Shown one piece after another: positions 4,406 through 64,000 of a stretch of DNA of 64,000 bases. This DNA is from Cycas panzhihuaensis (lineage: Eukaryota; Plantae; Cycadophyta). The position numbers and the translations under genes were made by a program. The notes beneath the pieces are model-generated. The model was not told the origin of the DNA and did not search any database. It saw only the letters and a list, made by a program, of their open reading frames with translations. The stretch is taken from NCBI GenBank assembly GCA_023213395.1, contig CM041465.1, forward strand, positions 175,219,741-175,283,740, in the 5' to 3' direction. Each line of letters begins with the position of its first letter. Position 1 is the first letter of the stretch.

Positions 4406-4718
4406 TTCATGATGTGTGTTTGGCGTGTAGATGTCTCTTCTCCTCATGTGTTTACAGCCCTACATGAGGGGCGTGAGCATCCAACTCTACTATCTTCTTT
4501 GGCATGCTCTGTCTTTGCTTGATGACTAGCCTCTTCTGCATTCGGCTCTTAGATTATGGCCTTTGTTTAGCTTTCCTCATCTCTAATATCAGTCTCTTTT
4601 TGTGTTTGACGCTTGGTTCTTCTTCTGTTATATGTGTCGTTTCTTCAATCGTGAGCACCTTTGCTTTGGTAGCTCTATGTCTTATGCATTGGCTCTGATT
4701 TTCATGGTTGGGAAATTA
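4406..4718 (+). repeat. Left copy of ~312-bp direct repeat flanking the Copia at 4719-9920
   Basis: ttcatgatgtgtg...ttcatggttgggaaatta aligns end-to-end with 9917-10225 (roughly 40 differences by eye). Confidence 0.9.
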
Positions 4719-14900: not shown

Positions 14901-17900
14901 CAATAAAGATGTCAAATACCTGACTTCTTGTTTTGAGCATATAAACCCAACATTTCCTAGAAAAATCATCGATAAAAGTGATAAAGTATTGACTTCCAGA
15001 GTACGAAGGTACTTGGAAGGGATCACAAATGTCAAAATGAATGAGGTTGAGTGACACTTTTGCTCTAAATGAGGTCTGATGTGACAAATGGTTCATGCGT
15101 TGCTTGCCTATTATGCAAGCTTCGCAAACACCCTATACAATGGTTAGGGAGGGAAGCCCATGCACCATATCATGCTTGTTTAGATACTTAAGTTTGCCAT
15201 AGCATGTATGACCAAACCAAGCATGCCATAGCTTACTAACTGGTCAGATTTAGCTATAAAGGCACTGAAAGATTTTGTTTTCGAATGTTGTAGGTTTGTT
15301 AGGTTATAGAGACCTGTTTTATGATCGACAGGTCCTGAAGCGATTGATTTAAACTCTTTTAAATATTGTTTAATGACAAATCTGTCTTTCTAGAATTCAA
15401 CAATGAGGTCGTTCTGGTAGATTTGATAGACTGAAAAAAGATTCGATAATAATCCAGGAATGCAAAACACGTTGTTGATAGAACTATCTTTCAAAGAAAC
15501 ATCTCCTATTCCTTTGACTTTTAGTTGAGAGCCGATTCAGAAAGAAATTTCTTCTTCGGAGTTAAGATCAGAATGGTATGTTGACAAGTATTCTTGGTGT
15601 CCCGTCATATGATGGGATGCACCAGAATCAAAAATCCACTTAGGTGGTTGAGCAGTTGGCGCTGAAAAAGCTAATGTGGTAGCAGTTAGGGAATGGTTAG
15701 GATTATGGAATCGTTATTGGATCCCCTTAGAAGCTTTCCAAGCTTCAAAAGCAATTCTATTCCTACTGACATCAATGGTGTGCCCCTTTTTGTGGCAGTA
15801 AACACAACTGACGTTTTGGTTAGGATTAGAGTTTATAATATTTCGTTTTTGGAATGACTGTTTAGAGGTATTATAGTTTTTCGATGGTTTAGAATACTTA
15901 GCATTATGATAAAAATTATTTGAAGAAGAAGAACTTCTATGAGGTTTTTGGAACTTAGGATTGTTGTTATGATTATTTTGATAGTTGTTATGCTGTTTAA
16001 ACTTGTTTAGTGATTTTGACTTGGAAAAAAGAGCCTGTGAAGGATCTTGTAACTTTCCAGTTTGAACCAACATTGTTTGGTATTCAACTAGCTGATTTGT
16101 TAGTTGATTGAATGTAATTGGAGGATAACCAGCCTGCTGCCTAGCAGTTTTGAATTAGTTAAATTGTTTGGGTAGTTTATTGATGGCGAGATTGACGAGT
16201 GTATCGTTGTCTTTGGCATGAATGATAGTTTCAACTTTATCACCTACTTTGGTTCAAGATTTGATGCAATTTCCTAGGTCTTTGTTAATAAATTGAAGTT
16301 TTGATAAGAATTCTTCAACTTTTGAGAAATCTTCATAATTTAAGTCATACATTTGTTATTCTAAAACGGTTAACTGTTGTTTATCAACCTTGTCATATTT
16401 TTCTTTGAGTGAATTCCAGACTGTGGCAAGATCATCTGTTTCAGAGAATTACCTACTAATATCGGGCAAGAGAGAGGTTAGGATGGTGCCTAGGGCTCCA
16501 TCATAATTCATCAGATAAACCATATAGGCTTCTGATTTTGTGTCTCTGGGTTTTGCAAATTCTCTTGTAACATATCATCATACCTTTTGTTGTTTTAGAT
16601 GATGGGATATGCGTGCTTTCCAACTGGCATAATTTGAGCCATTTAAAACTAGAATCGGTGCACAAGAGGTTGTCCCTGGCATGAGTGCCATTATGGGTAC
16701 AAAACCTATGACTAGAGATCCTCTTTGATGGAAAAAGAAGGAAACAAGAAGGAGAACAACTACATTAAGCCAGATTCAAAGTGATCACAACATTTGATTT
16801 TAATGAAATGTAATTATCATTGATTTAGTTCAAAGTAAATATTCATGCATAAATGTAAATGTATTATTAAATTTTGTAAATAATACATAAATAAACCCTT
16901 TAACACTTAAGACATTGATTGCCAATAATCAAAATGTGTAAATTTTAATCATAGACTTGAGAATTTAAGTCAAACATATAAGAATCTGCTTGTTTATATC
17001 TCCATTTGCATCAATGATAATGATTTAATTGTGTGTTTAAAAAATTGTAAGAAATAATTAATAATTATATAAAAAATGATGTAGTTAAGCAATGAATTTG
17101 TCAAATAATTGAATGTATATTGAATTAAAGCAATAAACTTAAAATATTGTGAACAAAATTCTGGATTGAAATCATGTACCTTGACCTACCTAGTCATGAT
17201 TAGAAGCTTGACTTCATGCGAGATTTTGCAGGTCAAAATGGCATCCAAAGGGTTCAAGTGACCAGTCAAAATGTCTGTGTCTGAACCAGGAATTTGATTC
17301 ATCTTCCAGAACTAGATTTTGACTCTGGATGAAGAAGTTATGGTTAAAAAAGTGTAGGTACCTCCTTTGTAAAATAAAGGGGGCTGGGTAATAGGGGTTA
17401 AGCCCCTTTTAGTATTTGAATGAGGTCATAGGGGGGTTGATGTGACTAGGGAGTTGGCGGAAAAAAAGGGCTAGCAAATGGCAGACCCGAAAAAACTATT
17501 CAATTTAATTTAATTAAGTTAAAACATTAGAAAAGAATAAATAAAAGAAAAAGTGACATATTTGAAATTTTAATAAGTCGGATTTAACAATTTTGCGCTA
17601 TTAAAAAAAAATGATTAAATGGGATTTGAATAAAGTTTCATATCCACAAGCTTATATAACCTAAAATTTAGGGTTTCACCTTATTTTCACTTGGCAGGGC
17701 AGCAGATTTTCTCTCTACTGTAGGTTTATGGCGAATTCTTCTCCCTTGCATGCCTCTACATCTTTGATAGAAGGATGGCATTTTCGCGTTGGCTTCAGCC
17801 TATGCATTTACATGAAGAGTTTAGCTCTTCATCTTCGTATTCCTCTACGAGCATGAAATCTCTGAGGGCATCTCTGTGGGCTTGAGATCTCTACATTTTG

Positions 17901-43001: not shown

Positions 43002-46000
43002 TGTTGACTCGACATACCGGACTGGATCACATTCCGGTATCAAGGTGGTTTGATTCGCCTCAATTTCACGCAACACGTTATGATACAACCAGCTAATCCG
43101 GCTAGTAATTGCTCCATCTTAGCTGGTGTATGGTTTCAATCAGCTACCATTCACTCAGGTTTGTAGCAATGGTCTATTGATTTCTCAAAGTTGTACTGAC
43201 CCGTTTTCAAAGATCTGCTCTACGTTATAGGGTCCCAGCCATCTCATCTTGAATTTCATTGGGTGTGTTTTGAATTTGTTGTCATAAAGGAGAACTTAGT
43301 CGCCTTTTTTGAACTATGGTCTGCGTAGGTGCCAATTGTGCCACGCTTTTTGTCATCATTTTTCTATGCTTTGTAACCATTTGGCCATATAACCTTTTTC
43401 TTCTAGTCTCACTAATTCTTATAATCTCTGTCGTAAGGAGTGCAAGTTGTCCAATCGACACTGCATAGCGGTTCTTAGACTTGGTATCTCAAATTCAGTC
43501 AGAATGATGGCCTCGGTTCCATAAACCAACTGAAATGGTATTTGCCCTGCCGATATTTTATATGTCATTTTGAAGGCCCACAGTATTGACGGTAGTTTCT
43601 CAGCCCAGTCTGACCTTCCCACATCGCAAATCTTTCGTAGGCAATTCTCAATAATCTTATTCGAGCTTCCTGCTTGCCCGTTAGCCCTTGGGTAATATGG
43701 CGTGGATTTTCGATGGCTAATCATGAAGGTTGATGTTAATATCTCTATTGTCTGATTGAGAAAATGGACCCCTTGATCACTCACGATTTCCAATGGGCAT
43801 CCAAATCGTGTAATGATCACTTCGTATAGAAATCGTGCCATACTTTCTGAATCTGCTTTTCTTAATGCTCAAGCTTCCGCCCATTTGGTCATGTGGTTGG
43901 TTGCCACTAGAATAAATCAAGCTAGAGATTGTTGGGCGGCCGGTTTGATTGGTCTGACGAAATCGAGTCCCCATTTCTCGAATGGTGCCAAAGGTAAGAT
44001 TGGGTGGAAGGGTTGGAAACTCTACCGATTAGGTTTTCCCATTCTTTGACAATAATCACATGCATGAGTCCATTTCCTCACATCTTCAAGCATTGATGGC
44101 TAACAAAATCCCAGTATTAGGATTTCTCTCCAAGTTGCCAATTTTCCCATATGTCCTCCTGCTACGCCTTCATGTGCTTGGGCCATAATTTGATTAACTT
44201 CATGTGGCCTTATGCATCGACCTAGTACTTCATCTAGTCCCAATTTGTATAATTCACCCTTAATCAATTGGTATGGTTCCGCTTTTCTCACAAAATTCAA
44301 TTGTTTCGTTCGATCCAATTATGGCAGCAATTCCCCTGTTGTTAAGTATTCTGGTATCCCATCATACCAATCTATCGGCACTACCTCTACGCTGAATAAT
44401 GTTGCATTGGGGAAGTCATCCGGTATCCCTGTAGGGTTTTCTCCATTTACAGTTCTTGATAATTGATCAGGAATGATGTGGGCTTTTTCCAGTTTCGCAA
44501 TAATTTTAAATGAAAATTCCTGAAATAACATTAGCCACCTACTAATCCGTCCCCTCATTATGGGTTTGTACAGCAGTACTTGGTGGTTGACAAAGAATAA
44601 GAATGGGTTTGACAATAGACAATGTCGGAATTTCTGTAATGCATACACCATTCCAAGTGCTTCTCTCTCTATTGTGGTGTAATTTTGTTCTGCCCTTATA
44701 AGTTTTTGACTTGCAAAGTATATAGGATGGTCCATTTTATCATCACTTGGTTGTGCTAATACACATCCGATGGCATACTGCGAGGCATCGATGTGTACAT
44801 GGAAGATTTTCTTCCAATCAGGGAATCGTAGTATGGGTGTTGAGATTATGGCCTTTTCTAGTGCCTCGAACGCCTATTGTTGCTCTTCACTCCATTCCCA
44901 TTCAACATCTTTTTTCAATAGTTCTTTGAGGGGTCCCGATATGCATGCATACCCCCTAATGAATTTTCTATAATAACCGGTTAATCCCAAGAATCCTTTA
45001 AATTGTTTTCTTGTGAACGGCACCGAAAAATATAGAATTGCAGATACCTTGGCTGGGTCCATTAATAATCCTTCTTTGCTCACTATATGGCCCAACCAGT
45101 TTCCAAATGGTACCAAAAAGGTACACTTCTCCAGGTTTAAACATAATTTATTTTTCACAACATGTTTGTAACATCCCTAAGGTTCTCCATATGGTTTTTC
45201 ATAAATCCATACAACATCCAATCATCCAAGAACACTACCACTTTTTCACCAATCATTTTGCGAAATATGTTAATTACTATCCTCTGAAATGTCGCTGGGG
45301 CGTTTGTAAGACCAAAGGGCATTACCTTGTATGCATATTTTTCCCATTCTATTACAAACGTTGTTTTTGCCTAATCCTCAGGGCGATTTGTACTTGGTTA
45401 TATCTATTGAACCCATCTGTGAAGGAATATATTTCGTTTCCTCCCACGGCTTCCAAAATATCCTCCGTAAAAGGTAATGGAAAGGGATCCTTTTTAGTTA
45501 GCTTGTTCAATTGCCTATAATCCACACAGACACGTATTTTCCCATTCTTTTAATTGACTACAGCAACAAGGCTTACCCAGTTGCTGTAGTCAATTTCATA
45601 AATATATCCCGCTTCCAACATCTTATCTAACTCCACTTTTACATTTTCTTTATATTTGGGATTCATCCGGTATGGTCTCTGCTTTATTGGCTTGGCTCCT
45701 TCGACTAGGTCGATATGGTGCATCCCAATCTCCAAGAGAATGCATTTAAGGTCTTTATATGACCATGCGAACACATCATGAAACTCTTCAAATAATTACT
45801 GAGCTTTAGCTATTGTTTGATCATCCCAATAATCTCTAATCTGAATGGTTTTGGGTTCCTCCTTACTTTCAACATTAATTTCAGTTGTTTTTAGTTTTGT
45901 TATTCCAATATCTTTTTTATCTCCTGTTTTATGGGCAGGGGTGTCTTCTATTTTTCTTTTTCCAAACTTGATCTTGATGAACTCCGTAGGGTAATTAGGA

Positions 46001-49000
46001 ATTTCTTCTTTTCCTTCATCCTCTAATTCTTCTTCCTTCTTCCGTACTGATGACATGGCTTTTTGCTCTAGGTTTATACTTAATTTCCTAATAACCTTGA
46101 GTATTCTATCAATGTTTTTATCTTCTGATGAATGTGAGAAAATTTTTATAAAGGATTTTTTGAGGTTTTCCCATGTTGCATCCAAGTTCCGTTCTTTTCC
46201 TAAGAACCAATCCCTTGCCACCTGACCTAAGGTACGGTAGAAAAGGTTGCTTCACATTTTCTTTGGTAAACTCAAGGATATTCGTTCTTGTTTGCACTTT
46301 TGGATATGTTTATTGGGGCATTCTCCTACATAGAATAATGGGATATTTAATTGCTTCGGGTGGTCAAACCGTATTCTAAATGTTGATTGTAGTTCCTTCC
46401 ACCCTTGGAAGGTAGCTTGGGGGGATAGGTACCAATACCAATGCCATCCTTCGCAAGGTTAGTATCAAGTCTATTTGCCATTGACTTTTGTCCCAATTTC
46501 CCTCTTTTATCCAATACTTTATACAATGAGTAAGATGAGTAGTTCCATATAGTTGATCCCCATAAAAAGGTTTGACATAATTCCCAATGTATGTTTCAAG
46601 GTTTCTTTCCTCGGGGATGGTTATCCTACTACCTAGACCTGAGTCTCTAGGGGTATATTACGTTGGTTCCCTTTCCATTTCCTCAGATTTAGCGCCAACA
46701 TTTGGAAAGGATCGATCGTTGGGTGGGTGTACCTCTAAAGAAGATGAGGAAGGATTGCTAATTCCTTTCTCGGGTTGTAATATGGGTGGGGATGGGTAAT
46801 CTACCTTAGGACCCACACTTAAGGCAAAGGAGGGGTTAGGGTTAGTATTAGATACTATAGAATTATGAAATAAACTAAGTATACTAGGAATAAGGGGGGT
46901 TTAGGTCTAGGGTTGGGGGGTTGTTATTCTCTATACTATTGTTAGTCCCCATATACTCAAAAGATTTTAAATTATTGTCAATGTCATCAGTTACATATTC
47001 AGAAAGCAAATTGCATCTATAAGAAGGAGAATTGACTTTATAAGCATCTTGTAACCAATAATCTACGAATTTCATTCCATTCTCATCATCAGAAGAATTG
47101 TAGATCTCCCCAAAGTAGGTTGGTTCAGTCTCTTGGAAGTTGATCATCTTGGTTGGCTCTTCGGTTGTATGGTATAGGTTTCCTTCATCAAACAAGGATG
47201 TTGTCACTTCACTTGCAATAGTCGTTCTTGAGCCGTCATCTGGTATCACCTCAATAGAACTTTTTCCCAGCATTGGAAGGACTACTTCATTCCCACCATC
47301 CAATAATGTAAAGGTTACATCTTTCTAGTTCTAGAAACACTAGGTTTTGTACAACCATGGTCTTCCCAACAAGGCTAGATAGGGTGTTGCACCTTTTTCT
47401 GTTTTTACAATCGTAAAATCAATTCTTATGGTAATTCCTGCCACATCCACCTTGATGTTGGCAAGTTTCGCCACTGGTCTCACCAATAATTCATTTGCCA
47501 ATTTCAACAAATAAGTTGCCGCTTCTAGTTTAGGGCTTCCCAGCTTCCGCTATGTCGAGGTTGGTAACCTGTTTACAGTAGCTCCTCCATCCACAAATAC
47601 CCTTGAAAATTTCTCTCCTAACACAGTGATTGCTACCATTGGGTCCATGTCAAAGGATGGCAATATCTTCTTTAAACTCTTAGTGACTTCTCGTTGCTGT
47701 AGTGTCCCTACTTTGATCCAATCTATCACTTGGCATAAGGGAATTGTTAATTGCAATTGTTTCACTAGATTTTCCATCAACAACAACATTCGTGGGATAT
47801 CTTCCACCGGTAACCCTTTAAATAGCTCCTCCATTTGCACCAATTGAGGTTGTGCCTTCTGCTCCTCCAATATTTTCTCCTTTTATCTGTTTTTCCTCAC
47901 ATATACATGATTTGTTTTTGGTTTACCCATCGGTAGCATTGTCTCAGTTTGGGCTAACTCCTCTAATACTTATTTCGCTTGTTCGAATTTGCCTATTCCC
48001 ATTTGCGGGTTTGGGTACCCTTCATCCATTCTCTCTTTCTGTTTCTTTTGGAGTTTTACGTTTTCACTGCTTTCTAGGATGATAGTCATTAAGTTAGTTG
48101 CTTTCACTTTTCCCTTACAATCTTCTATTATGTGCTCACTTGGCCCACAATTGTTGCATACGAATGGTTTATGTTCATATTTTTGTTTAGTTGGGCAGTC
48201 TGATTTCCAACGGCCGAATTGTAAACAGATCAAACATCTCCCCATTGGTTGTTTTTTCTTTGAGGATTCTTGTGTACTCCCCGTTGTATATATATTTCGA
48301 GGTGGGTTCCCCTACCTCGTCCTCTATAGGGCCTTCCTCTAGGGTTATAAAAACAATCTTTAGTAGTGTGACTATCCGTGTCATATATATGACACCATTT
48401 ATCTTTTTGGTGCATTGCACTATTTTTTGGATTGATTTCACACTCCTTAGTTGTATGCGAACTTTCCTCGCAAATATGGCACCATTTCTCAATTTTAAAT
48501 TCTCGGTCCTTTCTCTTTTTTACTTCTTCCTCCTCTTTGTTATTTCTCATTTTAAGTCGGGCAACCCCTTTCCTTAGAGCTTCCACTTTGGACTCTTTTT
48601 CTGAGATTCCTACTTGCTAAAAGGGTCGGTTATGTTGATTCTATTTCATTTCCCTTATTTCTTTTTGTAGCCTTAGTAAAAGGGGATCATGTCCTCCTGC
48701 TTGGGCATCCATCTCTGCTTTGAAGTCCAACGCCAACTCTTGAGCATTTTTTAATGATTTTAGTGGATGCGCATGCATCATAGACCTTAATTTTTCATTT
48801 AATCCTCTGACGAAATAATTCATCATGTTGTGGTCTATGACCATCTCGTAAATCATGTTGGCAGCAATGATTTTCATACGACTAATGTTAGTTAACACTG
48901 ATTCACCAGGCCTCTGTTTTATTTCCCTCAGGGCAATCTCCACAACTTCATTACTTTGAAATTTCTGAAATCTTTCCTCGAAGGATTTCTTTATATTTAC

Positions 49001-50905
49001 CCATGTTTCTGTTTTATCCAATTCTTTGTACCATGCCAATGGTACTCCTCTTAATGTACATGCAAATCTCGCTTTTATTTCATCTTTGTCTGTGATTTTC
49101 TTCACATTGACCAAATTCTGGAATAAATACACATGCTCTGCTGCATCTGAGGTGTCGTTGAAGATAAGTTTATACCAAAATCTCTGAAATCGTCCATCCT
49201 TGGTGATTGCACTAGTGTCCCACCCAATGGTGATCCTTCTCTTTTTGCCTCCTCAAAGGATTCTATTCCCTTTTCTCCACCCTTCACTTTAGGTGGTGTA
49301 TGTGGGGTGCTTGGTGCAGCACTATCTCTTCTAAATAGAGGATTCTTGAATGGTGTTTTTAAATGTATTGGCTCCTATACTCCTGGTACTTATACCGTCA
49401 ATGGTGTGACCACTAAATAAGACTACTCCGACCCCTTGTCCTGCGAATCCTCAAATAGTTGCCTTATTAGTTTATTCCCCCAATATGCCAAGGGACCTTC
49501 CTCCGCCTTCTTCTCACTATCACTCAGGTCCTTCAGGGTATCATCCACAGGTGTATTTTCCTCCTTCCTTAGGGTGTCGCTGTGTTCCACATTTCCTTTT
49601 GGTTTTTCCTCCTTTTTTGGGCTTAAAAGGTCATATTTGATTGGAGCAGGTGTTAGTACCATTTGCTCGCCATTATTTTCCTCTCCTTGTTCTTGAGGTG
49701 TCTAGGCTCCACTTGCCTCAGATTCTTCAACGGATTGTTCCTTAGTCTCGTTATTATGTAAACTCAATCTTCTTGCTCTTCTTAATTTTGACTCCTTTGA
49801 CCATCGTAATGCCCTTTGTTTGCTTGTTTCTTTCCACTTTGGTGAAGTATCCTTTTGTGGCTCTCCCGCCCTTGAAGGCCTCTTAGGTGGCATTGGAAGG
49901 TCCCATGGCTGTCGAAGGCTTAGTTACAGCCTGCCATCATGACGACAGCCAGGGTCCTCTGTCCTTTGAACATTCTCCCCTTTTGAAACTCCTAGCCCTA
50001 GTCCCTCCTTAGTGGACGTAGGCAACGGAACTAATGTTGACTCGGTTTCTCACCACACTTGTGAGAAAGTGCACTTGTCAAGGGATCACTAGTAGTCTAG
50101 TCTAAGATGCAGCCAACATGCTTCACGCACCAAATTATCATAGATTTATTAACAATTTCCACATAACTTCATCATAGATTACACACAGCAGTACAATAAT
50201 CAATAACTATCCATTACACAAGCATCATAGTACATATAGAACATAGATTTCCATGTAACTCTTCTTTTCATTAAGCAATAGGTCTCATACAATAAGTTCT
50301 AAAATGTATTCCCTATACATTCCAGCCGTATACACTGAGTTCTGTCATATACATTCCAAAAGGGTATGCATCACGGAATGCATCTATTGTAACTTTGTTC
50401 CGTACTACTAAATATGCGTGTTGGCTACTGTACCACCATGTGGGATGAATGCTCAACTCTCACCGCTGGAATGGTCCTTGCAAGCTTCCTTAAATGTGCC
50501 TCTTTGGTGCCTTTTGATGAAGGGTTATGATTCCCTGTCATAATCTTACCTTTTCAACCTCAATATATCCTTTCACTTAATCACTTGATTAATTACCTTT
50601 AACTAGTGTCTTTTCATCCATACGTTCGTATGTACGTCCCTTGGTGCTAATGTTGTCATCCTTTGGTGTCTTTTGGTCCAGGTCTGTCATGCGTACCTTG
50701 CTATTCATTAGCGTACCACAAACGATACATACCCTGTGTTGCATACCTGTTATGGTACACACCTGTCATACGTACCCAGAATGCTTGTCTTTCCAACTTT
50801 TCTCATCATACGTACCTCCATACGGTCTGTACCTGTATTCCAATGGTCAACACAGCCCTACATCCAGTTTCCACATAGCCTATTGTGCCAAAATGTGTCC
50901 CAACA
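43002..50905 (-). mobile_element. Non-chromoviral Ty3/Gypsy element with tRNA-Glu PBS; 5' LTR present, 3' end deleted
   Basis: 5' LTR 50035-50905 (TG..CA). PBS 50021-50033 (plus strand GGCAACGGAACTA, 12/13 identical to the tRNA-Glu 3' end). Gag 49893-48641, four CCHC-type knuckles 48116-48487, PR VFVDGGATVN (~47575-47605), RT FAWSYKDLK (45550-45774), RH DHPIYFASQKL (44319-44735), INT FGCPLEIVSDQGVHF (43419-43841), ending ~43120. Confidence 0.9.
50021..50033 (-). promoter_or_regulatory. Primer-binding site complementary to the tRNA-Glu 3' end
   Basis: Minus strand TaGTTCCGTTGCC one base after the LTR end. Plant tRNA-Glu ends ...GGCAACGGAACCA. Confidence 0.8.
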
Positions 50906-53575
50906 CTTATACATTAAGTTCGGATGGTAAAGCAGTGCAAAGAGAAAAACTAAAGATAAAGAAAACCAATATTGGGACAGAAGAGCAACCCCAGATGATC
51001 ACTATGGGGGATTACTGAATGAGGAAATGGTGCAACAAGCTACCTCATTATTTTTAGAATATAAGGATGTGTTTGCCTAGTCCTATAAGGATTTAAAAGG
51101 CATTCTATAAGATAGAATTGGTAGAGGGAGCTAAGCCAGTAAGGCAATGACCATACTACATGAACCCAAAATACAAGGTAAAAGCCAAAGCTGAGCTTGA
51201 CAAATTATTAAAAACAGACTATATTTTTGAAGTTGAAAACAGTGAATGGGTAAGTCCTGTCGTAGTCATTTTTAAGAAAAATGGAAAGCTCAAAGTTTGT
51301 GTCGACTACAGAGCCTTAAACAAGGCAACAAGAAAAAGGATCCGTTCCTAATTCCCTTTATAGAGGATATTTTGAAAAAAGTGGCAAGACATGAGGTTTA
51401 CTCATTCATGGATGGATTTAGCAGGTACATTCAGGTTCAAATTGCACCGGAGGACCAATTAAAGATGACCTTTGTAACCGAATAGGGCACATATGCATTC
51501 AGAGTAATGCCATTCAGATTGACGAATGCCTCTGCTACATTCCAAACAGTAATTCTCAATATTTTCAAATAGACAATAGGAAAAAAATTGAGGTATTTCT
51601 TGACGATTGGACATTATTTAATTTATTAAAAGATCATCTTGGTTGTTTGCGTTTGATGCTTGAAACATGTAGAGGGAACAAATTATGTTTAAATCCTGCA
51701 AAATGCACCTTTACGGTACCATTTGGGACCTTATTGGGTCATGTAGTGACGAAGAATGGACTACTCATGGATTCCAACAAGGTAGCGGTAATTTTAAATT
51801 TTCCAGTACCAAAGACAGAGGCAAGTGAAAGGATTTTTAGGAATGACGAGGTACTATAGTAAGTTTATAAAAAATTATGCTAAGACAGTTAATCCCTTAG
51901 AAATCCTGTTAAGAAAGAAAAATGAATGGCAGTGGAAGTTATAGCAACAGTTGGCATTTGAATTATTGAAAAGAAAGATAGCCCAAGCATTAATTCTTAG
52001 ATTTTCGGATTGGGATAAGCCCTTTCACGTGCATGTGGATGCCTCCTTATTTGCTATTGGATGTGTATTGACACAGCCAGAAGATGACAAAACAGACCTA
52101 CCAATTTATTTTATAAGTTGGAAACTAACAGATGCAAAGAAAAACTACTCGGTGATGGAATCAGAAGGCTTGAGCATGGCATATGCTCTCCAAAAATTCA
52201 GACATTATTTACTGGCTAATCCATTTGTCTTTTTTGTGGATCATCAAACCCTTCAGTATTTAATCAATAAGCCTATAGTTCAAGGAAGAATCAACAGGTG
52301 GCCTATGTTGTTCCAAGAATTCAATTTCAAGATTATAGTAAAAAAAGGTGCCAAGCATACTATCCCAGACTTCTTGTCAAGGGAAGTTAATGAGGAACCG
52401 GCAACAGGGATTCATGATGATATTTCAAACGCAGAATTATTCTCCATCAAAGCAGTTCCTAAATGGTACAAGGACATTGCACAGTACCTGGTGACAAGAC
52501 AAACACCACGAGGGATGGAGCGCGTAGAACGACAAAGTTTTATCAAAAAAACTTTTCCCTTCCAATTAATCCAGGGAATGTTATACAGGATGAGACCAGA
52601 TCAAGTCCTGAAAAGATGCATAATGGAGCACAAAGTTGAAGCTGTCATTAGAGAAACCCATGAAGGAGCCGTAGCGAGACATCAAGGTATCAAGTCTGCA
52701 AGTAAGAAAATTCTATTGGCAGGACTCTGGTGACCCACAATTCTTGAAGACGTACAAAAATGGGTCGATAGTTGTGATGCATGTCAGCGAGTGGGGAAGC
52801 CGACAAAGAACCATTTTGTACCCTTGTGCCCTATTGGCCCAAGCTCCATTTGAAAAATGGGGATTGGATTTCTTTGGACCTATCAGTCCACCAGCTAGGC
52901 GTACAAATGCAAAGTATATTCTAGTAGCCACTAATTTTTTAACAAAATGGACCGAAGCAAAAGCAATGAGGACATGTGATGCTCAGAGTACAGCCCGATT
53001 TTTATACAAAATGATAATCATCCAGTTTGGCTACCCGTTAGAAATTGTTTCTGATCAAGGAAGTAGCTTTCTCAATAAAAAAATAAAGCATCTTACACAG
53101 GAATTTTTTATTTAGCATTCAAAATCTTCTCCATATTATCCATAAGCAAACGGGCAAATAGAGAGCACAAACAAAATTTTAAAACTGGCATTATCCAAAA
53201 TTTGCAATCAAGGACGAACGCACTGGGTAGAGCATCTTCATTCTGTTCTATACGCTGATAGGACAACAATAAAAAGACCCCATAAGCAAACTCCGTTTCA
53301 GTTGGTCTATGGATTAGAGGCCATAATTCCTCTAGAATTTCAGAAGGAAAGTTTGTGAGTGGCATCTCAACTACGGCTATCCGAAGATGATTCACGAGAC
53401 CAACGACTCTTAGATTTAATGAAATTCGATGAAAAACTGGCAAGGGCCTTGTGGGAACTGAAAGTAGAAAAGAAGAGACGAAAAGCATGGCATGATCAAC
53501 ACCTCAAAGTCCCACAGTTTCAAGAAGGAGATTTCATACTTCTGTATGATAGTAAATTTTGCATAAAGCCAAGAA

Positions 53576-56500
53576 TGTAACATTCTAAAAAACTAGTTAA
53601 AACTATGCCATGTAACCATTCAAATCCAAGGCCTCTGAATGAGGATTCTAACGGTTCAGATGAAAGTCAATTCCAACATTTGTATCAAATGTTATGACCG
53701 TTTAAAATTAGCCTGCTAATTTTGGAGAAGTTCTGGCCAACTTCTATTTAAATAGTATTAAGGATAATATCACCCAGTCTGGCTGACTTCTAATTGAAGT
53801 AGTTTGATCACTATCTATAGGAAGTTTGGGCTGCATCCCAAACCATCGTCGAAAGTTCTTTTTGCTGCGTATTTTCAATTCTAGGACTGCAATTAGCTTG
53901 CCCATTTTGGGGCTGTAGTTTGGAGGATTCCTCGCCTTGAAGAGGGAAGCTCACTACTTTAGTAAAGACTAGTATTTTGTTGTAATTTCGCTCTATTTTG
54001 GTATTATTTGACAATAAAGATTATTATTTACTTCTGTGGATTCTGTAATTCCTATTCCTTGTTCATTTTCTTGTTGAATAGCATCTAGTTACTGTCTTTT
54101 GTGGATTATTACCTGTATTTTTGAGGAAAATTACTATAAAAATAGAACTAGACCGCTACAAGTGGTATTAGAGCTTCGTTTTGAGGGGAAAGAGCAGAGG
54201 TAAAAGCACAAAAAAGGTCGAAAATCCCCCTCGCCCCCCCAAGGCAAGTAGAAATGGAATTGAGATCAAGGAAAAACCTCATTCCCAGGAAGATGGCAAC
54301 CCAATCCAGAACCTCAAAGGAAAAAATTAAAGGCACATCACAATTAAACCAGAGCATAAAGGCTTTAACAATCTTAATCCAGGAGTTACTAGCAAAAGCG
54401 GATCAAGTAACACAGAATGTGTCGGGTGGAGAAATGGATAACTTCAATGCATCAGGAATAGATCAGATAGATACCTGGAATAATCAAGAAAACCAAGGGA
54501 ATAGATTTGATGGACAAGTTTATGAAAGGAGAACTTCCAACATAGATAAAGGATGGAAAGGAGCAAGATTATCCTTGGAAAAACTTGATCCCGAAGTATC
54601 CAAGAATATCATAAATTGGATCTTATAAATAGAGAACTATTTCAGGGTTTATAACTCAACAACTAAGGAAAAGATGGAAATAGCATCCTTACACTTAAAT
54701 GGAAGGGCATTAAGGTGGTACTATTGGTGGCAAAAGATGAACTTACCAATACAACATACTTGGGAGAATCTAAGAGGAGGATTAGTAGAGCAATATGACA
54801 ATTCTTAGAGCACGAATTACTTCGCTCAGCTAACACGATTACATCAACAAGGAACAATCCAAGAATATACGGAACGATTTCAAATGCTACGATGTATGGT
54901 CTCAGAAAAAATACCGCAGGAATGTTTACTAGAGACTTATATCAGTGGATTGAAAAATCAGATCAAATTTAGAGTTAAAGTAGTAGACCCACCACAACTC
55001 CAAGTAGTAATTCGGATAGCAAGAAATGTGGAGGCATAACTCAAAGACAGTAGACCAACATATACAAGGAGATATGAGGCACCATCATATCAGACCCAGA
55101 ATCCTAATTGGGCAAAATTAGGAACAAAAGTAGATCCTCTTTTAGCTATAAGAAATATAGGAGAAAGCTCAAGAACAACAAAAGAGGAGCATATAAGAAA
55201 AGGGATGTGCTTCAAGTGTGGAGAAAAATGGAATAAAGAACACCAGTGCCTGGCAAAGAAGGTTTTCATGATCAATAATGAGGATGTAGAAATACCAGAA
55301 GAAGTAGAGGAAGAAGTAGAACAAGACCAGAGCATAGAAAGGGAGAAGGATGAACTTCTGGAAGTGGATACAGGGAATGTCCAAATCTCATTACAGGCCA
55401 TTATGGGGCAACAAGTATTCCCGCAAACCCTAAGATTCCAAGGACAAATCAAGGGAACACCAGTATCAATTTTGGTTGACAACGGGAGTACACACAATTT
55501 TATAAACAAGGCATCAGCAGAAAAACTGGGATTACAAGTGAAACCTCTCAACACATTCCAGGTGTCAATAGCAAATGGGAGAACAACACCATGTGGAGGA
55601 TACTGCAAAGATACAACTCTCCAAATCAACGATTACAAGGTCACAACTTGTATGTTTGCCATGCCCATAGACGGAGTGGACGTAGTTCTGGGGATTCGAT
55701 GGCTACAAATGCTGGGAAACATCGTTACCAACTATATGACAAGATTTATGTGTTTCCGACAAAAAGGATGCAAATATCGACTACGAGCCCCAGCCACACC
55801 TCCAGTTCAACTTGTATCATCTCACAGGATGGAAAATTTTCTAAAGAAGAATCCACAAGCGTACATAATATCATGTTACAAAGTAGAAATAGAAGACATT
55901 ACCCCAGAGATTTAGGCAATCTTAATAGAATATTAGAGAGTTTTTGAAGAACCCTAAGGACTGCCATCGAAAAGGGAATTAGAACACGCAATAGACCTTG
56001 TCCCTGGAGCAATACCGGTCAACATTCCTCCATAAAGACATCCTTATCATTTCAGGAAGGAAATTGAAAAAATCACACAAAAACTGTTGCTCCAAGGCAT
56101 AGTGGTGAAAAGCATCAGTCCATTTACCTCTCTCGTGGTGGTCAGTCCAAAGAAGGATGGATCTTACAGAATGTGTGTGGATTATTGTGGCCTGAATAAA
56201 TTGACCATCAAGAATCAATATCCTATCCTAAGAATTGAAGATTTGTTAGATGAGTTACATGGAGCCCGATACTTTTCAAAAATAGATTTGTGCTTAGGAT
56301 ACTACCAAATAAGGGTCAAAGAAGAAGATGTCTACAAAACTGCATTCAAAATGCATGCAGGGTTGTTTGAATTCAGGGTTATGCCTTTCGACTTAACAAA
56401 TGCTCCAACTATTTTCCAAAAAACAATGAATTCAATATTAAAACATGTTCTGAGGAAATTCATACTAGTTTTCTTTGACGATATCCTGATCTATAGCAAA

Positions 56501-59314
56501 ACATGGGAAGAACATATGGAACATATAAAGGCAGTCCTGCTCATACTTGAGAAAGTGCAATTGTTTGCAAATAAAAAAAAGTGTTCTTTCACAAAAGAGG
56601 AATTAGAGTATCTGGGCCACATTATCACAAGCAAAGGAATCAAAATTGATCCAAAAAAGATCCAGGCAATTGTAAACTGGCCAACTCTTAAGAATGTCAT
56701 AGGAGTAAGAAGTTTTTTGGGCGCAGTAGGATTTCTGAGAAAGTTCTATGCACACATAACATCGCCATTAACAGACCTGACCAAAAAAGATGCATTCAGA
56801 TGGAATTCAGGAGTAGAAGGAGCATTTCAAGAATTAAAACAAGCAATGATCACAGCTTCAGTATTGACCTTACCGGATTTTACTCAACCATTCACATTGG
56901 AATGTGATGCTTCAGGTTTTAGAATAGGAGCAATTCTGTTACAAGGAGGAAGACCTATAGTTTATGAAAGCTGGAAGGTGAATAATAGGGAAAAAACAAA
57001 ACCGATATATGACAAAGAGATGCTGGCCATTATGCACACAATACACCAATGGAGGCAATATTTATTACGGAGTAGATTTGTGGTCATAATTGATCACGAC
57101 TGCCTAAAGTACTTTCTGAATCAAAAGGCATTATCCGATGAGCAACAAAAGTGGGTCAGTAAGTTGCAGACTTTCAACTTCACCATAGAATACAAAAAGG
57201 GGAAAGAAAACGTAATAGCGAATGCTCTATCCAAACTGCCAGAGGAAGGAAACATTGAAGCCTCAGCCAATTCAATGACAATAGCAACTCCAAAATGGAC
57301 AACAGAGTTGGCAAAGGAATATGAAGATGACAAGATATCACAAGAAATAAGACAAAAGATTAGAGAAGGAAAAGCAGTGCACTTCACGGAACAAGGAGAA
57401 TTAATTCTAAGGAAAGGAAAAATATATGTTCCAAAGACAAGTAAACTAAAAGAAGCACTACTTCAAGAAGCTCACTCAACTCTAGTTTCAGGACATTCAG
57501 GGATGGATAAGACTTATAGAAGGTTTCGAAGTTCATTTTATTGAAAAGGGTTGAAATCCGACGTCCTCCGGTTTGTATCAGAATGTGATACATGTCAAAA
57601 GAATAAGACTGAATCTGCGAAGACCCCCGGGTCCTTCCCATTCCCCATCAAAAATGGGAAGAAATTTCTATGGATTTTATTACAGGTCTTCCGTATTCAA
57701 AAGGAAGAGACATAATTTTTGTAGTGGTAGACAAATTAACTAAATACACCCATTTCAGGGGAACTCAGATAGGAGCAAAAGCAAGCCAAATAGTAGAATT
57801 ATATATGAAAGGAATTCACAAACTACATGGCTTTCCAAAAGTTATAGTCAGCGACAGGGATTCCAAATTCACAAGTCACTTTTGGAAGGAGCTATTCAAA
57901 TCAGCTGGCACTAGCCTACACATGAGCTCAGCATACCACCTGCAGACAGATGGCCAGATAGAAATAATTAACAAATGTGTGGAGGGATACTTAAGAAACT
58001 TCACATCAAATAAACAGAAGCAATCGCTTCGATGGCTCCATTTGGCAAAATGGTGGTATAACACCACATACCACACAGTGGCAAAAATGTCACCATTTCA
58101 AGCACTATATGGGTATGAACCTCCATCACTCTTGAATTGGCTAAATACGTATAAAGTGCAAGCAGTCCAAGAAAACTTGCAATAGATGCAAGAAACAATG
58201 AAAATACTAAAGGATAATTTGGAGATGGCGAAGAATAGGATGAAGCAACAAGCAGATAGAAAGAGATCTGAACGGAGTTTCAGGATAGGAGAATGGGTAT
58301 TCTTAAGACTCCACCCCTACAAACCGATGTCGATGAAAGAAAATAATCAACATAAATTATCAGCAAGATTCTTTAGACCATATCAGATCGAGGAACGCAT
58401 AGGGGAAGTGGCATATCAGTTAAAACTGCCACCAGAAAGCAAAATCCACAATATATTCCACGTGTCTTGTTTAAAAAAAAAGTTGGGTGAAAAGGAGGCT
58501 CCACAAACAAATTTACCAACACTAGATGAAGAAGAAATGATGATAGTGGAACCTGAGGGGATACTGAAGACCAGGGACAAGAATTTGCAATCCAAGATAA
58601 TAAGAGAATATCTCATCAAATTGAAGGCATTGGAGCTTGAAGATGCAATGTGGGAGTCTGAAGAATAGATGCAGAAAAATGGGCCCTTACCAATGTTTGG
58701 AGGGCAAAGCATGTTTTGAAGGGGAGGGACTTGTAACATTCCAAAAACTAGTCAAAACTATGCCATATAACCATTCAATTCGAAGCCCTCTGAATGTGAA
58801 TTCCAACAGTTCTGATGAAAGTCAATTCCGACATCTATATCAAAAGTTATGACCGTTTAAAATTAACCTGCCAGTTTTGGAGAAGTTCTGGCCAACTTCT
58901 ATTTAAGCAGTACTAAGGATAATATCACCCACCCTGGATGACTTATAATTGAAGCATTTTGATCAATATATATAGGAAGTTTGGGCCACATCCCAAACCA
59001 TCGTCAGAGGTTCTTTTGGTTGCGTATTTTCAATTCTAGGGCTGCAATTAGCTCACCCATTTGGGGGCTGCAGTTTGGAGGGTTCCTCGCTTCGAAGAGG
59101 GGAGCTCACTTCTTCAGGAAAGACTAGTATTTTGTTGTAATTTCGCTCTATTTTGGTATTATTTGATAATAAAGATTATTATTTACTTTTGTAGATTCTG
59201 TAATTCCTATTCCTTGTTCATTTCTTGTTGAATAGCATCTAGTTATTGTTTTTTGTGGATTATTACCTGTATTTTTGAGGAAAATTGCTATAAAAGTAGA
59301 ACCAGATCGCTATA
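53576..59314 (+). mobile_element. Full-length chromoviral Ty3/Gypsy (Reina-like), 5.74 kb, AAGAA TSD
   Basis: TSD AAGAA 53571-53575 and 59315-59319. LTRs 53576-54160 and 58732-59314. PBS TGGTATtAGAGC 54163-54174. Gag knuckle CFKCGEKWNKEHQC, PR ILVDNGSTHNFI, RT/RH ORF 56087-57544 (FFDDILIYS), INT 57670-58668 with chromodomain EYLIK...DAMWESE. PPT GAAGGGGAGGGA 58718-58729. Confidence 0.96.
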
Positions 59315-59550
59315 AAGAAAGTTAAAACTATGATGGCTTGGTCCATACAAGGTGAACCAAATTCGACATAACGGAGCAGTGCGGCTCCAACAACTTGATG
59401 GAACACTAATTGAAAAACCAGTCAACGGAAGTCGACTGAAATGATATATGGCAAGTTTAACAAAAAGTTAAAAAAAAGAAAGACAAAAACCAGGGAAACA
59501 GATTTTCCTCGATGATCTCAAATTATGGAATTTTAAGGAATTGATCAAAG

Positions 59551-60400
59551 ATGCAAAAAGGTTGTAACTCGGGATGCAGAAGGTTGCAATCTATAGAGCA
59601 AAATGGTTGCAACTCGGGACACAAAAGTTTGCAATCGAGAATGAAAACCAGTCACAACCTTGATGCGAAAAGTTGTAACAAGGGGAGCAAAGTGGTTGCA
59701 ACCCAGGACACAGAAGGTTGCAACTCGGAAAGTGAAGTAGTTGTAACTCGGACGCAGAAGATTGCATCCCAAGAAACAAAGTGATTTCAACCCGAGACAC
59801 AGAAGGTTGCAAGCAAGAAGCGAAGCAGTTGCAATCTAGACGCAGAAGGTTACAACTAGGGAAGCAAAGCGATTGCAACCAAGAAGCGAAGCGATTGCAA
59901 CTCGGACATAAAAGGTTACAACCAGAAAAGCAAAGCAGTTACAACCCCAAACGCAGAAGGTTGCAACCGAGGAGGTAAAGAGGTTGCAACCCAAGATGCA
60001 GAAGGTTGCAACGAAGAAGCTAAACGATTGCAACTCGAATGCAGAAGGTTGCAACCAAAAAAGTAAAGTGGTTGCAACTCGAGATACAAAAGGTTGCAAC
60101 CAGAGAAGCAAAGTGGTTGCAACCCAAGACACAGAAGGTTGCAACCAGAGAAGCAAAGCGGTTCCAACCCGAGACGCAAAAGGTTGTAACCAGAGAAGCA
60201 AAGTGGTTGCAACACGGATGGAGAAGGTTACAACGTGGAAAGTAATCTGTTACAACTTGGACACAGAAGGTTGAAACTGAAGAAGTAAAACAGTTGCAAC
60301 CTGAGCGGTAAAGTGATTACAATTGAAGAAATAAAACAATTGCAACCTGAGATGCAGAAAGGGAGTAAAATAGTTGCAATACAGAATGTAGAAGGATACA
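59551..60400 (+). repeat. Tandem array, ~42-bp dimer of ~21-bp subunits each centred on palindromic GGTTGCAACC
   Basis: For example agaaggttgcaaccagagaagcaaagtggttgcaacccaagacac is repeated across 60040-60215. Dozens of degenerate gttgcaac cores. Periodic translations in all frames. Confidence 0.92.
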
Positions 60401-60404
60401 ACTA

Positions 60405-60640
60405 ATAAAGTGAAAGGATGGCAACCAGGTACAACCAAGAAAAGTTAAGGACCGTAACCAAACACAACCGAGGGAAGTAAAGGATTGCAACTAGGTGCAA
60501 CCAAGAAAAGTAAAGGATTGCAAACCGAGAAAAGTAAAGGATCACAACCAGACACAACCAAGGGAAGTAAAGGATTGCAACCAAGCGCAATCTAGAGGAC
60601 TTAAGGATTGCAACCAAGAAGAATAAAAGAATGCAGCCAG
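60405..60640 (+). repeat. Second tandem sub-array, ~33-bp unit (aaggattgcaaccaggcacaaccaagggaagta-like)
   Basis: Repeated aagtaaaggattgcaac...caaccaag units directly after the first array. Confidence 0.8.
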
Positions 60641-60957
60641 GCATAAATTAAAAAGGGAAAGACTATAACTAGATGTAGTCGAGGAAAACATTGTAAGGAA
60701 ACATAACCAGGAATAGCACCAAGTGTAATTAAATAGCAAAAGATTGTTATAAAAAGTTATGCAAAATGGAAGATAATTACATCAATAAAGAAACAGTCAA
60801 ATCAGGAAAATGTAGAAATAAAGCGAGGTACAAGTGGTTAATGATGACGACGACCGTTCGACGAAAATCGTTGGCAATCCGATTGACGCACAAGCCGAGA
60901 TGATTCAAGAAGCAAATATGGTGATAGGTGGACGTCATGCATAGGAGGAGAGAAAAG

Positions 60958-62823
60958 ATGGTACGTTGGGGTGGCAACTTAGTTATTGCAACCATAATTT
61001 GAAATCATAGTGGGTTTTGCATGGTTGAGAGGATACAGGGCAGCAGGGTTGAAGGCAGAAACCAGGAAACTTTGGAAGCAATTACAGAAGATCAAGATGA
61101 AGACTACTAGAGATATTCAGATTAATCTCCGAAGGTAGATAATGAAGGAATTAGGAACGATTGTTGTAATATGCGAAAGGAGGATGCGAGAAAAGTGAAT
61201 CTGACAAAGGCAGAATTTGCACAATATGTGCAAACCGGATTATTTCTAACAGCCATAAAATTTATGTTTGTAATGATTCAACTTAAAGCACACCAACCAG
61301 ATCTTCTAGATACTTCAGCGAAGGCTATTGCACAAGTTTCAGGGTTACTTGATTTAGGTGAAGAGGTGCCTAAGGATAAAAGAATCCCACAGGAGCAAGT
61401 GGCAAAACAATTAGGTGCATAAATATTAGATGTTTCTACATCTGGTATTTGTATCATCGATATTGCAGATAACCTTAGGCATTAGGTAGCTCATTTTCTT
61501 TCTACCCGAGTAATATTAAACCAGAAAAATTTGTATGTACCCATAGAGATGAGATCGACACTTCTACAAGTGGCGAAGGGAGATAAGTTTAACTGGGCTT
61601 CGTTTCTTTCAAGCAAGTTTGCAGAAAAATTGCATAACATCAAAGCAGGTCCATAGTCGGTAGTCTTTTATCATCAAAGCCTACTCCAGGGATTGTTGTA
61701 CTCGCAATGTCCTGATTTGGAACTACCCACAGCAGAATCAGGACAATCGATTATGACTAGATGGATTAATTACTTCAGAAGATGGAGAAAATTTTGACAC
61801 AATGAAATTCAAGATAAAGTGAAGGATTATTTTTTAAGAAAAAGCCAAGTCAGCAACCTTCAACCGACATCAGCAAAAGGAAGAAAGGGAAAATGACAAC
61901 GGGAAGAGGCGACCTTGCTAGCCGACAATCAAAGGGAGAATGATGAACAGAGAACCAGAGAGGAAAAGAACAAAAAGGAGAAGATTAGAAGAGGGAAGTA
62001 GAAGGTAGGTGATGTGTCAGTTAAGAAGGAAGTGGAGGAGGAAGAGCACCAGCCAGCCCCGCAACTTGAGAAACTTGCAAATACTAAAGAAGAAAGAAGA
62101 AAGAAGAGAAAAGTTGCCGCAGAGAAAGCCAAGGGGGAAATTATTGAAATTTTGAATAGTCAGACGACCCAGATGGACTTTGATTACAACAATAAGGAAT
62201 TGACTGAGGAAAGGATTTATCCAATGGAATGCCAGCCCCATAATGTGGCACACTGGAAGATTTCATTCCTAGCTAAAGTCATTTGGCAACTGGTTAGTGA
62301 GCTTGAAGCCTGGAGCAAAAGGCCACCGCCAGACTTGTAGAGGATTCAAAAGACAGAGGATCAGTTGGTCGCTTGTGAGACAAAATTGGAATTTTTGAGC
62401 AAGTTTATTCTGCATTGGGTTGGAGATACTTCTTGAATAGAGCATTTGGTACCAGTTTTCAATGCATTGTTTAATGAGCAAATCCCACAAGGATTGGAGA
62501 AGGTAGTTCGTAAACTGGGAGCCTGGATAATGCATACACAAGAAGATGTTGAATATGCCAATCATTTTTGGTTGATGATTACCTCCTTGCGAAGAGATTT
62601 GTTGTCTGTGGAGACAAGGAAAAGCGAATTGGAAGAGGAAATCGAACAACTGCACTCGAGAGAAAAGGCAACAATGGCCCAACTACAGGCATTACGCAAT
62701 GTTGTCATCTTCTATGATCACTGCAAGAAGTAGGGCATAAACCCACCTTGTACAGTTTATCGGCCTGATCCATAGTGGATTCACACGGAGATGGCAAAGA
62801 TCAGGAAGGACCGAGAAGGCTAA
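60958..62823 (+). pseudogene. Decayed extra ORF downstream of pol (sense): globular region, K/E-rich linker, C-terminal coiled coil
   Basis: ORF pieces 61171-61422, 62014-62340 and 62446-62733 are joined by stop-interrupted coding sequence (e.g. LLQVAKGDKFNWASFLSSKF). Heptad-like LRRDLLSVETRKSELEEEIEQL. Confidence 0.6.
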
Positions 62824-62845
62824 TCTTTTTTGTAGGATGAAGGCT

Positions 62846-62908
62846 AATGACTTTGTAATATTGTTGCTCTTGTGCCTAGTTATACATGTCAATAGGTAGA
62901 ACCACACA
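62846..62908 (+). repeat. 63-bp extra copy of the LTR 3' end (U5), duplicate of 63301-63363
   Basis: aatgactttgtaatattgttgctcttgtgcct...taggtagaaccacaca occurs at both positions with about 5 substitutions. Confidence 0.92.
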
Positions 62909-62909
62909 T

Positions 62910-62985
62910 TGGTTCCATTATTGGGACATGAACCCAGGTCTCTCGGGTGAAAGCTGAGTATCCTAACCAACTAGACTACAACGGA
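62910..62985 (-). tRNA. Full-length tRNA-Glu retrocopy (pseudogene) with genomically encoded CCA
   Basis: Reverse complement TCCGTTGTAGTCTAGTTGGTTAGGATACTCAGCTTTCACCCGAGAGACCTGGGTTCATGTCCCAATAATGGAACCA (76 nt) matches plant cytosolic tRNA-Glu as recalled (TCCGTTGTAGTCTAGCTGGTTAGGATACTCGGCTCTCACCCGAGAGACCCGGGTTCGAGTCCCGGCAACGGAA+CCA). Anticodon reads TTC, possibly decayed from CTC. Confidence 0.9.
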
Positions 62986-62989
62986 GAGA

Positions 62990-63363
62990 TGTGTGCGGTT
63001 GAATTAGTTGCAACCAGATTAATATAATTGAATTGTCAAAGAGTGGTTGCAACCAACTTGAGTTGCAGTTACAAAAGATAAAGTATAAATGTAAAAGGGC
63101 ATTTGGGGGTGTGACAATTTTTGCTACTGGTGTGTGGAACGTAGTTCGTCTATATACTTGTACCTACTGTAAATTGTCCCAATGACTATGTGTACTATTT
63201 CGGGTTATCTCTGGTTGTGAGAGGACCAGAGCAACTCGTCATAATGGAATGAATATGGTTTTTGGCCTCATACAATTGTTGTTTTCAGAATGCTTGAATG
63301 AATGACTTTGTAATATTGTTGCTCTTGTGCCTACTTATGCGTGTTGATAGGTAGAACCACACA
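62990..63363 (+). repeat. 3' LTR (~374 bp) of the Gypsy at 50906-63363
   Basis: Starts TGTGTG after purine run GGAGAGA and ends CCACACA. TATA-like gtataaat at ~63083. An identical end at 62908 is followed by a PBS. No paired 5' LTR in the window. Confidence 0.7.
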
Positions 63364-64000
63364 TAGACAAAAACAAAGACCAGTAAAGCCTCAACTTTCT
63401 TTGCTCATTAAGAACGAGATTGAAAATCTTTTAAGGGCAAAATTCATTTACCTTGTTGATGATCCTAAGTGGGTTTCGAATATTGTTCCTATTATGAAGA
63501 AAAATGGAACTATTCAAGTTTGTGTTGACCTTCGTCAACTTAATAAAGGATGTCCTAAGGACGATTATCCTTTACCATTCATCAACTCAATTGTTGATTC
63601 TACTACTGGTTTGAAGTCATGTCTTTGATGGACGCTTTCTCTAGCTATAACCTAACTTGTCTAATTGAAAAAGACCAAATAAAAACCTCATTCACTACCC
63701 CTTGGGGTAACTATGTTTATTGTGTCATGCCACTTGGCTTTATCAATGTTGGTGTTACTTATCAATGAGCAATGACGATTGCATTTCACGATCTCATTTC
63801 TAATGATTTAGTAAACACCTATGTTGATGATCTAAATGGACAATCACATACACGTCTTAACCATTTACATGACTTAAGATTGATATTTGAAAGGCATATC
63901 AAATATCTAATCTGTTTCCTGCCAAATGTGTATTTGATTTTATAGTCGTTATAGCTAGTGTTCAACGGGATCAACATTGATCCTAATAAAGTTAAAGTTG
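63364..64000 (+). mobile_element. Tat/Ogre-type Gypsy RT fragment (probable host of the preceding element)
   Basis: RQKQRPV...WVSNIVPIMKKNGTIQVCVDLRQLNKGCPKDDYPLPFI, then FTTPWG and YVDD (~63820). Runs off the window end. Confidence 0.88.

Follow-up and report, generated by a model that had tools for sequence, protein, structure and literature searches.

A complete copy of the tRNA-Glu primer, with CCA, beside the 3' LTR of a decayed gypsy element in Cycas panzhihuaensis

Element B and its surroundings

The window analysed here, a stretch of 64,000 nucleotides from the cycad Cycas panzhihuaensis, contains towards its right end a decayed gypsy retrotransposon (element B). Immediately upstream of its 3' LTR we found a short cassette (62826-63363 including the LTR) in which a copy of the LTR end is joined to a reverse-copied tRNA-Glu. 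The host element and its neighbours on this side of the window are arranged as follows.

51121-53575, plus strand: pol remnant of element B (RT fragment, RNase H, integrase), assigned by Pfam
53576-59315, plus strand: nested gypsy element C, which interrupts element B, with RVT_1, RNase H and integrase domains
59316-62845, plus strand: 3' region of element B, comprising a decayed extra ORF in frame 1 (about 61126-62823) and, before it, tandem repeats (59546-60646)
63364-64000, plus strand: flank, RT-coding remnant of a different retroelement and insertion target of element B, read from RT-like stop-to-stop segments

The pol remnant of element B starts abruptly inside the RT at about 51121, with RT-like segments from about 51151 onwards, and carries Pfam matches to RT_RNaseH/RT_RNaseH_2 (51945-52730) and rve (52675-53112). 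Its order of RT, RNase H and integrase is the Ty3/gypsy order. On the DNA level, 51121-53575 is 66% similar to an inverted element at 44590-45705. Best protein matches of the RNase H/integrase ORF showed 40-77% identity, with fern and pine names among them, and the top matches on short Logan contigs reached at most 71-77% identity. A protein search with the 98-aa piece of the extra ORF nearest to the cassette found no homologues. The long region between pol and the LTR, the tandem repeats and the extra ORF suggest a non-chromovirus, Tat/Retand-like placement of element B (compare PMC11963269).

Neither a second full copy of the LTR of element B nor an LTR pair or TSD for this element was found in the 64-kb window, and the element is therefore 5'-truncated. 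It is also decayed and split by the nested element C. The 586-bp LTRs of element C (53576-54161 and 58732-59315) are 89.8% identical, and the element is flanked by an AAGAA duplication and has a tRNA-iMet-like PBS (TGGTATTAGAGC) with one C-to-T change. Lying outside the cassette, element C provides a minimum age.

Next to the truncated start of element B lies a further gypsy element on the minus strand (element A, 43400-51160), which extends from gag to integrase. The tRNA-Glu PBS that had been noted in this neighbour at 50021-50033 was found again as 13 nt reading TAGTTCCGTTGCC (50033-50021 in the orientation of the element). Its putative 5' LTR of about 1.1 kb abuts the start of element B and has no partner in the window; apparently a deletion or rearrangement has deprived both elements, A and B, of one end. 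A 10-nt exact match to part of tRNA-Glu or its complement (50092-50101) lies in the LTR of element A about 60 nt from its PBS, and other exact matches of 10-12 nt to tRNA-Glu or its complement occur at 12536-12547, 15694-15703 and 15816-15826. These short matches are individually near chance (E 0.2-3).

In the 3' region of element B, the stop-to-stop segments of the extra ORF share one frame. The initial annotation had this ORF end at 62823, and a frame-1 stop is indeed present at 62821-62823, but several earlier stops precede it in the same frame. The TRF arrays in 59546-60646 are built on GGTTGCAACC, a palindromic core that occurs about 20 times in these arrays and twice in U3 of the LTR (63007-63054). 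Such repeats could form a candidate binding-site array common to the internal repeats and the promoter region. The motif GTTGCAACC was found 23 times in the window, always in the tandem repeats of element B or in the LTR, with 0.33 occurrences expected by chance. Since this motif is absent elsewhere in the window, the LTR and its 63-bp duplicate belong to element B and not to an unrelated element. The sharing of GTTGCAACC also argues against the origin of 62846-62908 from the LTR of an independent element, which the initial annotation had named as a finding that would overturn its model. An independent mini-element made up of cassette and LTR and inserted by chance was considered as well, and is disfavoured by the same sharing with the interior of element B, which has no other 3' LTR.

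The flank at 63364-64000 has a separate high-copy depth profile and no Pfam match at E<0.01; its identification as an RT remnant comes from reading the translation.

The cassette and its tRNA copy

Between the extra ORF and the end of the LTR, the following features were recognized.

62826-62831, plus strand: T-run read directly from the sequence, putative U-box
62834-62843, plus strand: purine tract AGGATGAAGG, followed by CT; putative 5' part of the PPT and left junction of the insertion
62846-62908, plus strand: U5-end copy, corresponding to the last 63 bp of the LTR
62909, plus strand: single T spacer between LTR end and PBS
62910-62985, minus strand: reverse copy of an entire mature tRNA-Glu including CCA, present anticodon UUC (ARAGORN)
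62986-62989, plus strand: GAGA, putative 3' PPT remnant and right junction
62990-63363, plus strand: 3' LTR of element B, 374 bp, with TGTGTG...CACACA termini as terminal inverted repeat

The 63-bp copy of the LTR end, one of the first features to be noticed here, is identical to 63301-63363 at 58 of 63 positions (92%, E 7e-21), and four of the five differences are transitions. The one-nucleotide spacer, GAGA and the LTR were likewise confirmed at the coordinates first proposed for them. The tRNA-Glu at 62910-62985 is the sole tRNA reported by ARAGORN in the 64-kb window. A match to Rfam RF00005 at 62913-62985 (47.2 bits, E 5.9e-07) spans model positions 1-71 of 71 and, together with ARAGORN, bears out the claim of a whole tRNA-Glu with CCA. 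The plus strand opens at 62910 with TGG, the complement of CCA, and the first 13 nt of the tRNA copy on this strand are the family PBS. The succession of LTR end, T and TGGTTCC is also present in 24 contigs of the LTR family, in element A and in a metagenomic contig (L002, see below), and in a second such contig (L001) the tRNA copy is followed by purines (AAGAG) much like the GAGA at 62986-62989. For further copies of the cassette or the LTR in the 64-kb window, BLAST gave only the 63-bp U5 match. A PBS-pattern search of the window yielded chance-level matches only, and no tRNA-like match of at least 9 nt was found inside the LTR (62990-63363).

With the two metagenomic contigs as reference for canonical tRNA-Glu(CUC), the window copy shows the changes G30A, C34T, C50T, A58T, G64A, G65A, C66T and C69T. 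The tRNA complement, originally described as exact, is thus complete with eight changes. Seven of these are transitions, largely at CG or CHG sites, and the UUC anticodon may be a secondary C-to-T change from CUC. Besides T58, the copy contains C49xA65 and A30xC40 mismatches. It is decayed, as seen from its Rfam score (47.2 bits versus 56-58 bits for L001 and L002), a minimum free energy fold that is not a cloverleaf (z -0.47), the 92% identity of the adjoining U5 copy and the 89.8% identity between the LTRs of the nested element. No run of four or more T was found on the minus strand in the approximately 150 nt downstream of the tRNA copy.

The sole transversion among the eight changes is A58->T at 62928. 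Methylated m1A58 is the required signal for plus-strand strong stop (PMC8599865), and its bypass leads to misincorporation, including that of dATP (PMC4787781). A58->T is the misincorporation expected opposite m1A58 and fits a read-through of a modified, mature tRNA. Because it is the only transversion and recurs in L001 between unrelated flanks, T58 in these two independent copies is best read as an RT footprint on modified mature tRNA. Judged from its letters, namely the encoded CCA and the footprint at position 58, the window copy derives from a mature RNA.

The LTR family and whole-primer copies in metagenomes

Family members were sought in three low-coverage sequencing runs with short contigs, aligned at 80% likeness and comprising 16% of the sampled words of the stretch. 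The contigs break at repeat borders, and a RAD-seq raw-read run contributed 2 reads. The LTR family is highly repeated, with summed depths of 600-6000 in the three runs. At the 5' junction of the family, the 24 contigs (all from one run) read LTR end, T, TGGTTCCATTATT, ATTT and TGAACCAAGG, which confirms the LTR boundary, the T spacer and a tRNA-Glu-type PBS. The family PBS has ATTATT instead of the canonical CGTTGCC; it deviates at 4 of 13 positions and is nevertheless the majority form. A mismatched PBS persists in a high-copy family, and the leader beyond it resembles the T-arm complement.

The cassette region (62760-62927) is a depth trough of 150-550 in the three runs. At position 62951 (anticodon position 34), 440-830 depth units carry G, i.e. 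the CUC anticodon, compared with about 0-7 for the letter of the window among the matches listed. Contigs with G at 62951 end about 33 nt further at the tRNA 5' end, as expected for real tRNA-gene unitigs, and in one contig the canonical TTCCGTTGCC stands in place of the decayed version of the window. From the depth trough and the near-absence of the window's anticodon letter among the matches listed in these low-coverage runs, there is no sign of a family-wide cassette: the family is abundant without a cassette at appreciable copy number, and the window copy appears to be private or low-copy. The difference between the UUC letter (0-7) and CUC-type sequence (440-830) might reflect a different gene body for Glu(UUC) or a great amplification of CUC-type copies.

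We further scanned metagenomes for tRNA-Glu complements with CCA that read past position 58 and obtained two informative contigs; the same scan of a viral collection found none. In L002 (Ga0233343_1005250), an LTR-like end (...ACAACA), a T and a 73-nt tRNA-Glu(CUC) complement including CCA occupy positions 706-798. This copy has the canonical A58, and other letters stand where the complement of tRNA positions 1-3 would be. It is followed by a leader and Pro/His-rich ORFs, so that the primer copy lies at the 5' PBS position of another element. L001 (Ga0315911_1232533) contains a TATA-bearing LTR-like stretch and then, at 372-447, the complement of a full 76-nt tRNA-Glu(CUC) with CCA, followed by AAGAG and a remnant of an hAT transposase dimerisation domain (773-955, minus strand). 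Its only changes from the canonical sequence are A58->T and G64->A, which amounts to two differences from L002 in the shared tRNA body. L001 may represent the right end of an LTR that integrated with the primer copy still attached. No flanks common to the window and these contigs were found.

Repeated captures of this kind would explain the window cassette as well as the two metagenomic contigs if tRNA-Glu-primed gypsy lineages were intrinsically prone to primer read-through, for example through a leaky m1A58 stop on plant tRNA-Glu. We offer this as a tentative idea that is rather less probable than probable. If it holds, extended or multipartite primer-binding regions could be built from such captures, and genomes would keep a record of the RT signature of m1A58. 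Recurrence in tRNA-Glu-primed lineages would also provide a simple origin for tRNA-complementary boxes in LTRs and leaders, and it would give the strong-stop model of how tRNA-SINEs arose, taken up below, a concrete precursor.

Origin of the cassette and comparison with known systems

The cassette could be the fossil of one aberrant reverse-transcription cycle with two template switches at the PPT, a reading for which we see the chances as evenly balanced. The register, which runs from U5 over 1 nt and the PBS on to tRNA position 1 and includes CCA, indicates that the tRNA was a covalently attached and copied primer. A sequence in this register corresponds to plus-strand strong-stop DNA that was not halted or, equivalently, to the complement of the 5' end of a tRNA-primed minus strand. 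Mature tRNA-Glu would have primed minus-strand synthesis at the PBS of the element. Plus-strand strong-stop synthesis would then have passed the PBS and copied the whole primer to its 5' end, with a misincorporation opposite m1A58 that is now seen as A58->T. Two template switches would have placed the last 140 nt of this DNA at the PPT, made up of 63 nt of U5, the T spacer and the complement of the 76-nt tRNA. At one breakpoint, tRNA position 1, the template would simply have ended, and GAGA and U3 follow, possibly with GGA/GA microhomology; the other would lie inside U5, where the copy meets the 5' portion of the purine tract. Element B, or a very low-copy ancestor of it, would be the integrated product, which decayed thereafter.

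Both acceptor points fall where the PPT is expected, with the T-run and purine tract on the left and GAGA and the LTR on the right. The initial annotation had likewise taken the cassette for a copied tRNA-primed strong-stop molecule that switched templates at the PPT. The core of that proposal is supported by the register, the CCA and A58->T; the position at the PPT we infer, as we do which strand changed templates, in what order this happened and how the PPT originally read. Two details count against the two-switch reading. It does not account for the CT that separates the purine tract from the U5 copy, and the 13-nt PBS of the cassette has the ATTATT variant of the family, which speaks against a fresh copy of a canonical tRNA unless parallel decay at CG/CHG sites is assumed.

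Two variants were examined and rejected. The 63 nt do not represent full minus strong-stop DNA (R+U5), as TATA-like boxes at about 63085 and 63152 would place the RNA start well upstream of 63301. The sequences ATGAAGG and ATGAATG at the left junction are similar, but their use as a microhomology would not yield the observed GGCT and AATGAC.

Two alternatives retain the copied primer as the root cause. The family variant in the PBS would be accounted for if the primer had been captured earlier at the 5' PBS of the family and the 3' cassette were a duplicate of the 5' end of genomic RNA, made by a switch from the PPT to the leader of a co-packaged RNA and back. RNA templates alone would suffice for this, and L002 offers a precedent with its LTR end, T, 73-nt tRNA-Glu complement and leader. 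In addition to the 13 nt that follow the family PBS consensus (ATTATT) and not the canonical tRNA, the ATTT TGAACCAAGG of the family leader resembles the T-arm complement of the cassette, TGAACCCAGG, at 9 of 10 positions and shares its G->A change. However, the 24 family contigs show the 13 nt and a short T-arm-like piece and no full tRNA complement, the leader consensus has an agreement of only 0.67, and next to TGAACC the leader keeps the canonical T, whereas the cassette shows the letter corresponding to T58. Most of the shared changes, moreover, fall on CG/CHG sites, which often decay in parallel, and we consider this earlier capture unlikely. A tandem arrangement of LTR, tRNA copy, PPT remnant and LTR may instead have existed first, made from unprocessed cDNA ends in a 2-LTR circle or concatemer or in a read-through transcript. 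A later deletion, in the genome or during reverse transcription, would then have taken away the end of the PPT and 311 bp from the start of the upstream LTR. The succession of U5, tRNA complement, GAGA and U3 is the joint expected from unprocessed right and left ends, the same structure is reported for circular MLV DNA (summarised in PMC12220202), and deletions are common in old plant elements, elements A and B both being truncated. This course of events requires an extra deletion whose left edge fell by coincidence within a few bases of the PPT, and the rest of the upstream LTR has left no trace; it seems to us quite improbable.

Chance might also have brought a normal tRNA gene, a pseudogene or a tRNA-derived SINE to the side of the LTR, and unitigs of tRNA-Glu(CUC) genes are plentiful in the related runs. 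The copy has an encoded CCA, keeps exact register with the spacer and U5, as a primed strong-stop product would, and ends precisely where tRNA position 1 meets the PPT remnant; it lacks a SINE body, a tail and a target duplication, its boundaries are the element's own U5 and PPT/LTR, and no further copy is present in the window. We attach next to no weight to this explanation. A heritable, selected cassette that equips the lineage with a primer tRNA gene or Pol III promoter of its own, plus a second PBS, like the 5S domain of Cassandra, had been proposed in the initial annotation. The A and B box regions are largely present and, going by base pairing, a 76-nt complement would bind tRNA-Glu strongly. 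Against this, there is no sign of the cassette in a family of very high depth among the matches listed in the low-coverage runs, and it is a single antisense copy outside the LTR, which also separates it from TRIMp3/Cassandra elements. A58->T alters the T loop and hits the B box, the seven further substitutions break stems, the minimum free energy fold is no cloverleaf, no T-run terminator follows, and functional tRNA genes do not have the encoded CCA seen here. The host copy is 5'-truncated, interrupted and dead. Nothing points to a working tRNA gene, a Pol III cassette or a second PBS under selection, and selection of this kind is very improbable; the idea of a system carried by a lineage is not supported, and the cassette reveals no new functional system.

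That nothing similar had been described, as first stated, proved too strong, given the MLV circle and HIV-1 tRNA insertions (summarised in PMC12220202) and Helenus/TRIMp3 (PMC10886601). In a circular Moloney MLV DNA clone, a tRNA was copied between the LTRs (Colicelli and Goff 1986, as summarised in PMC12220202). The primer tRNA stayed attached, was copied by plus-strand synthesis and ended up between U5 and the next U3, which is the likeness to the cassette. That clone was an unintegrated laboratory circle of a mutant virus with a spurious tRNA-Gly primer, whereas the window has a germline-fixed plant gypsy element with its normal primer type, in which the upstream LTR is cut to 63 bp inside the PPT. 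In HIV-1 HITME, 63-65 nt of tRNA-Asp or tRNA-Glu were inserted just upstream of the 3' LTR (Konstantinova et al. 2006, likewise summarised in PMC12220202). Here too a cellular tRNA was placed in the retroviral 3' region by RT template switching, but it replaces an engineered hairpin and is in no register with U5 and PBS, in contrast to the window, where the register points to a covalently extended primer.

Helenus, Ajax and Cassandra (TRIMp3) are LTR elements with small-RNA-derived Pol III promoters (PMC10886601) and, like the window element, LTR retrotransposons that hold tRNA- or 5S-derived sequence. Their small-RNA part lies in both LTRs in sense orientation, lacks CCA, is conserved in multi-copy families and is thought to be SINE-derived. 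In the window, by contrast, a lone antisense copy lies outside the LTR; it includes CCA, derives from the primer, is decaying and was not seen in the family. In the early 1990s Ohshima and Okada reportedly proposed that tRNA-derived SINEs arose from strong-stop DNA. In minus-strand orientation, the cassette consists of tRNA, CCA and U5 complement and thus resembles the SINE progenitor postulated there, but it shows no independent insertion, tail or amplification and is embedded in its parent element.

Within an incomplete coverage of the literature, we found no description of a germline plant element that keeps the U5 end, the whole primer and a PPT remnant, or of a position-58 footprint in such primer copies. 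The cassette is probably a clean natural example of whole-primer copying that survived to the germline, otherwise represented mainly by laboratory retrovirus clones, and the A58->T change, present in two independent copies, resembles a fossil trace left by RT at m1A58 of a plant tRNA-Glu. In HIV-1 without a stop at position 58 or 54, plus-strand DNA enters the tRNA body and mismatches the other strand, and the read-through products are dead ends that cannot be integrated (PMC8599865). In the window, by comparison, such a product would have been rescued by template switching and fixed in the genome with its misincorporation footprint, so that a replication intermediate was preserved with its U5 end, spacer, whole primer including CCA, and PPT remnant.
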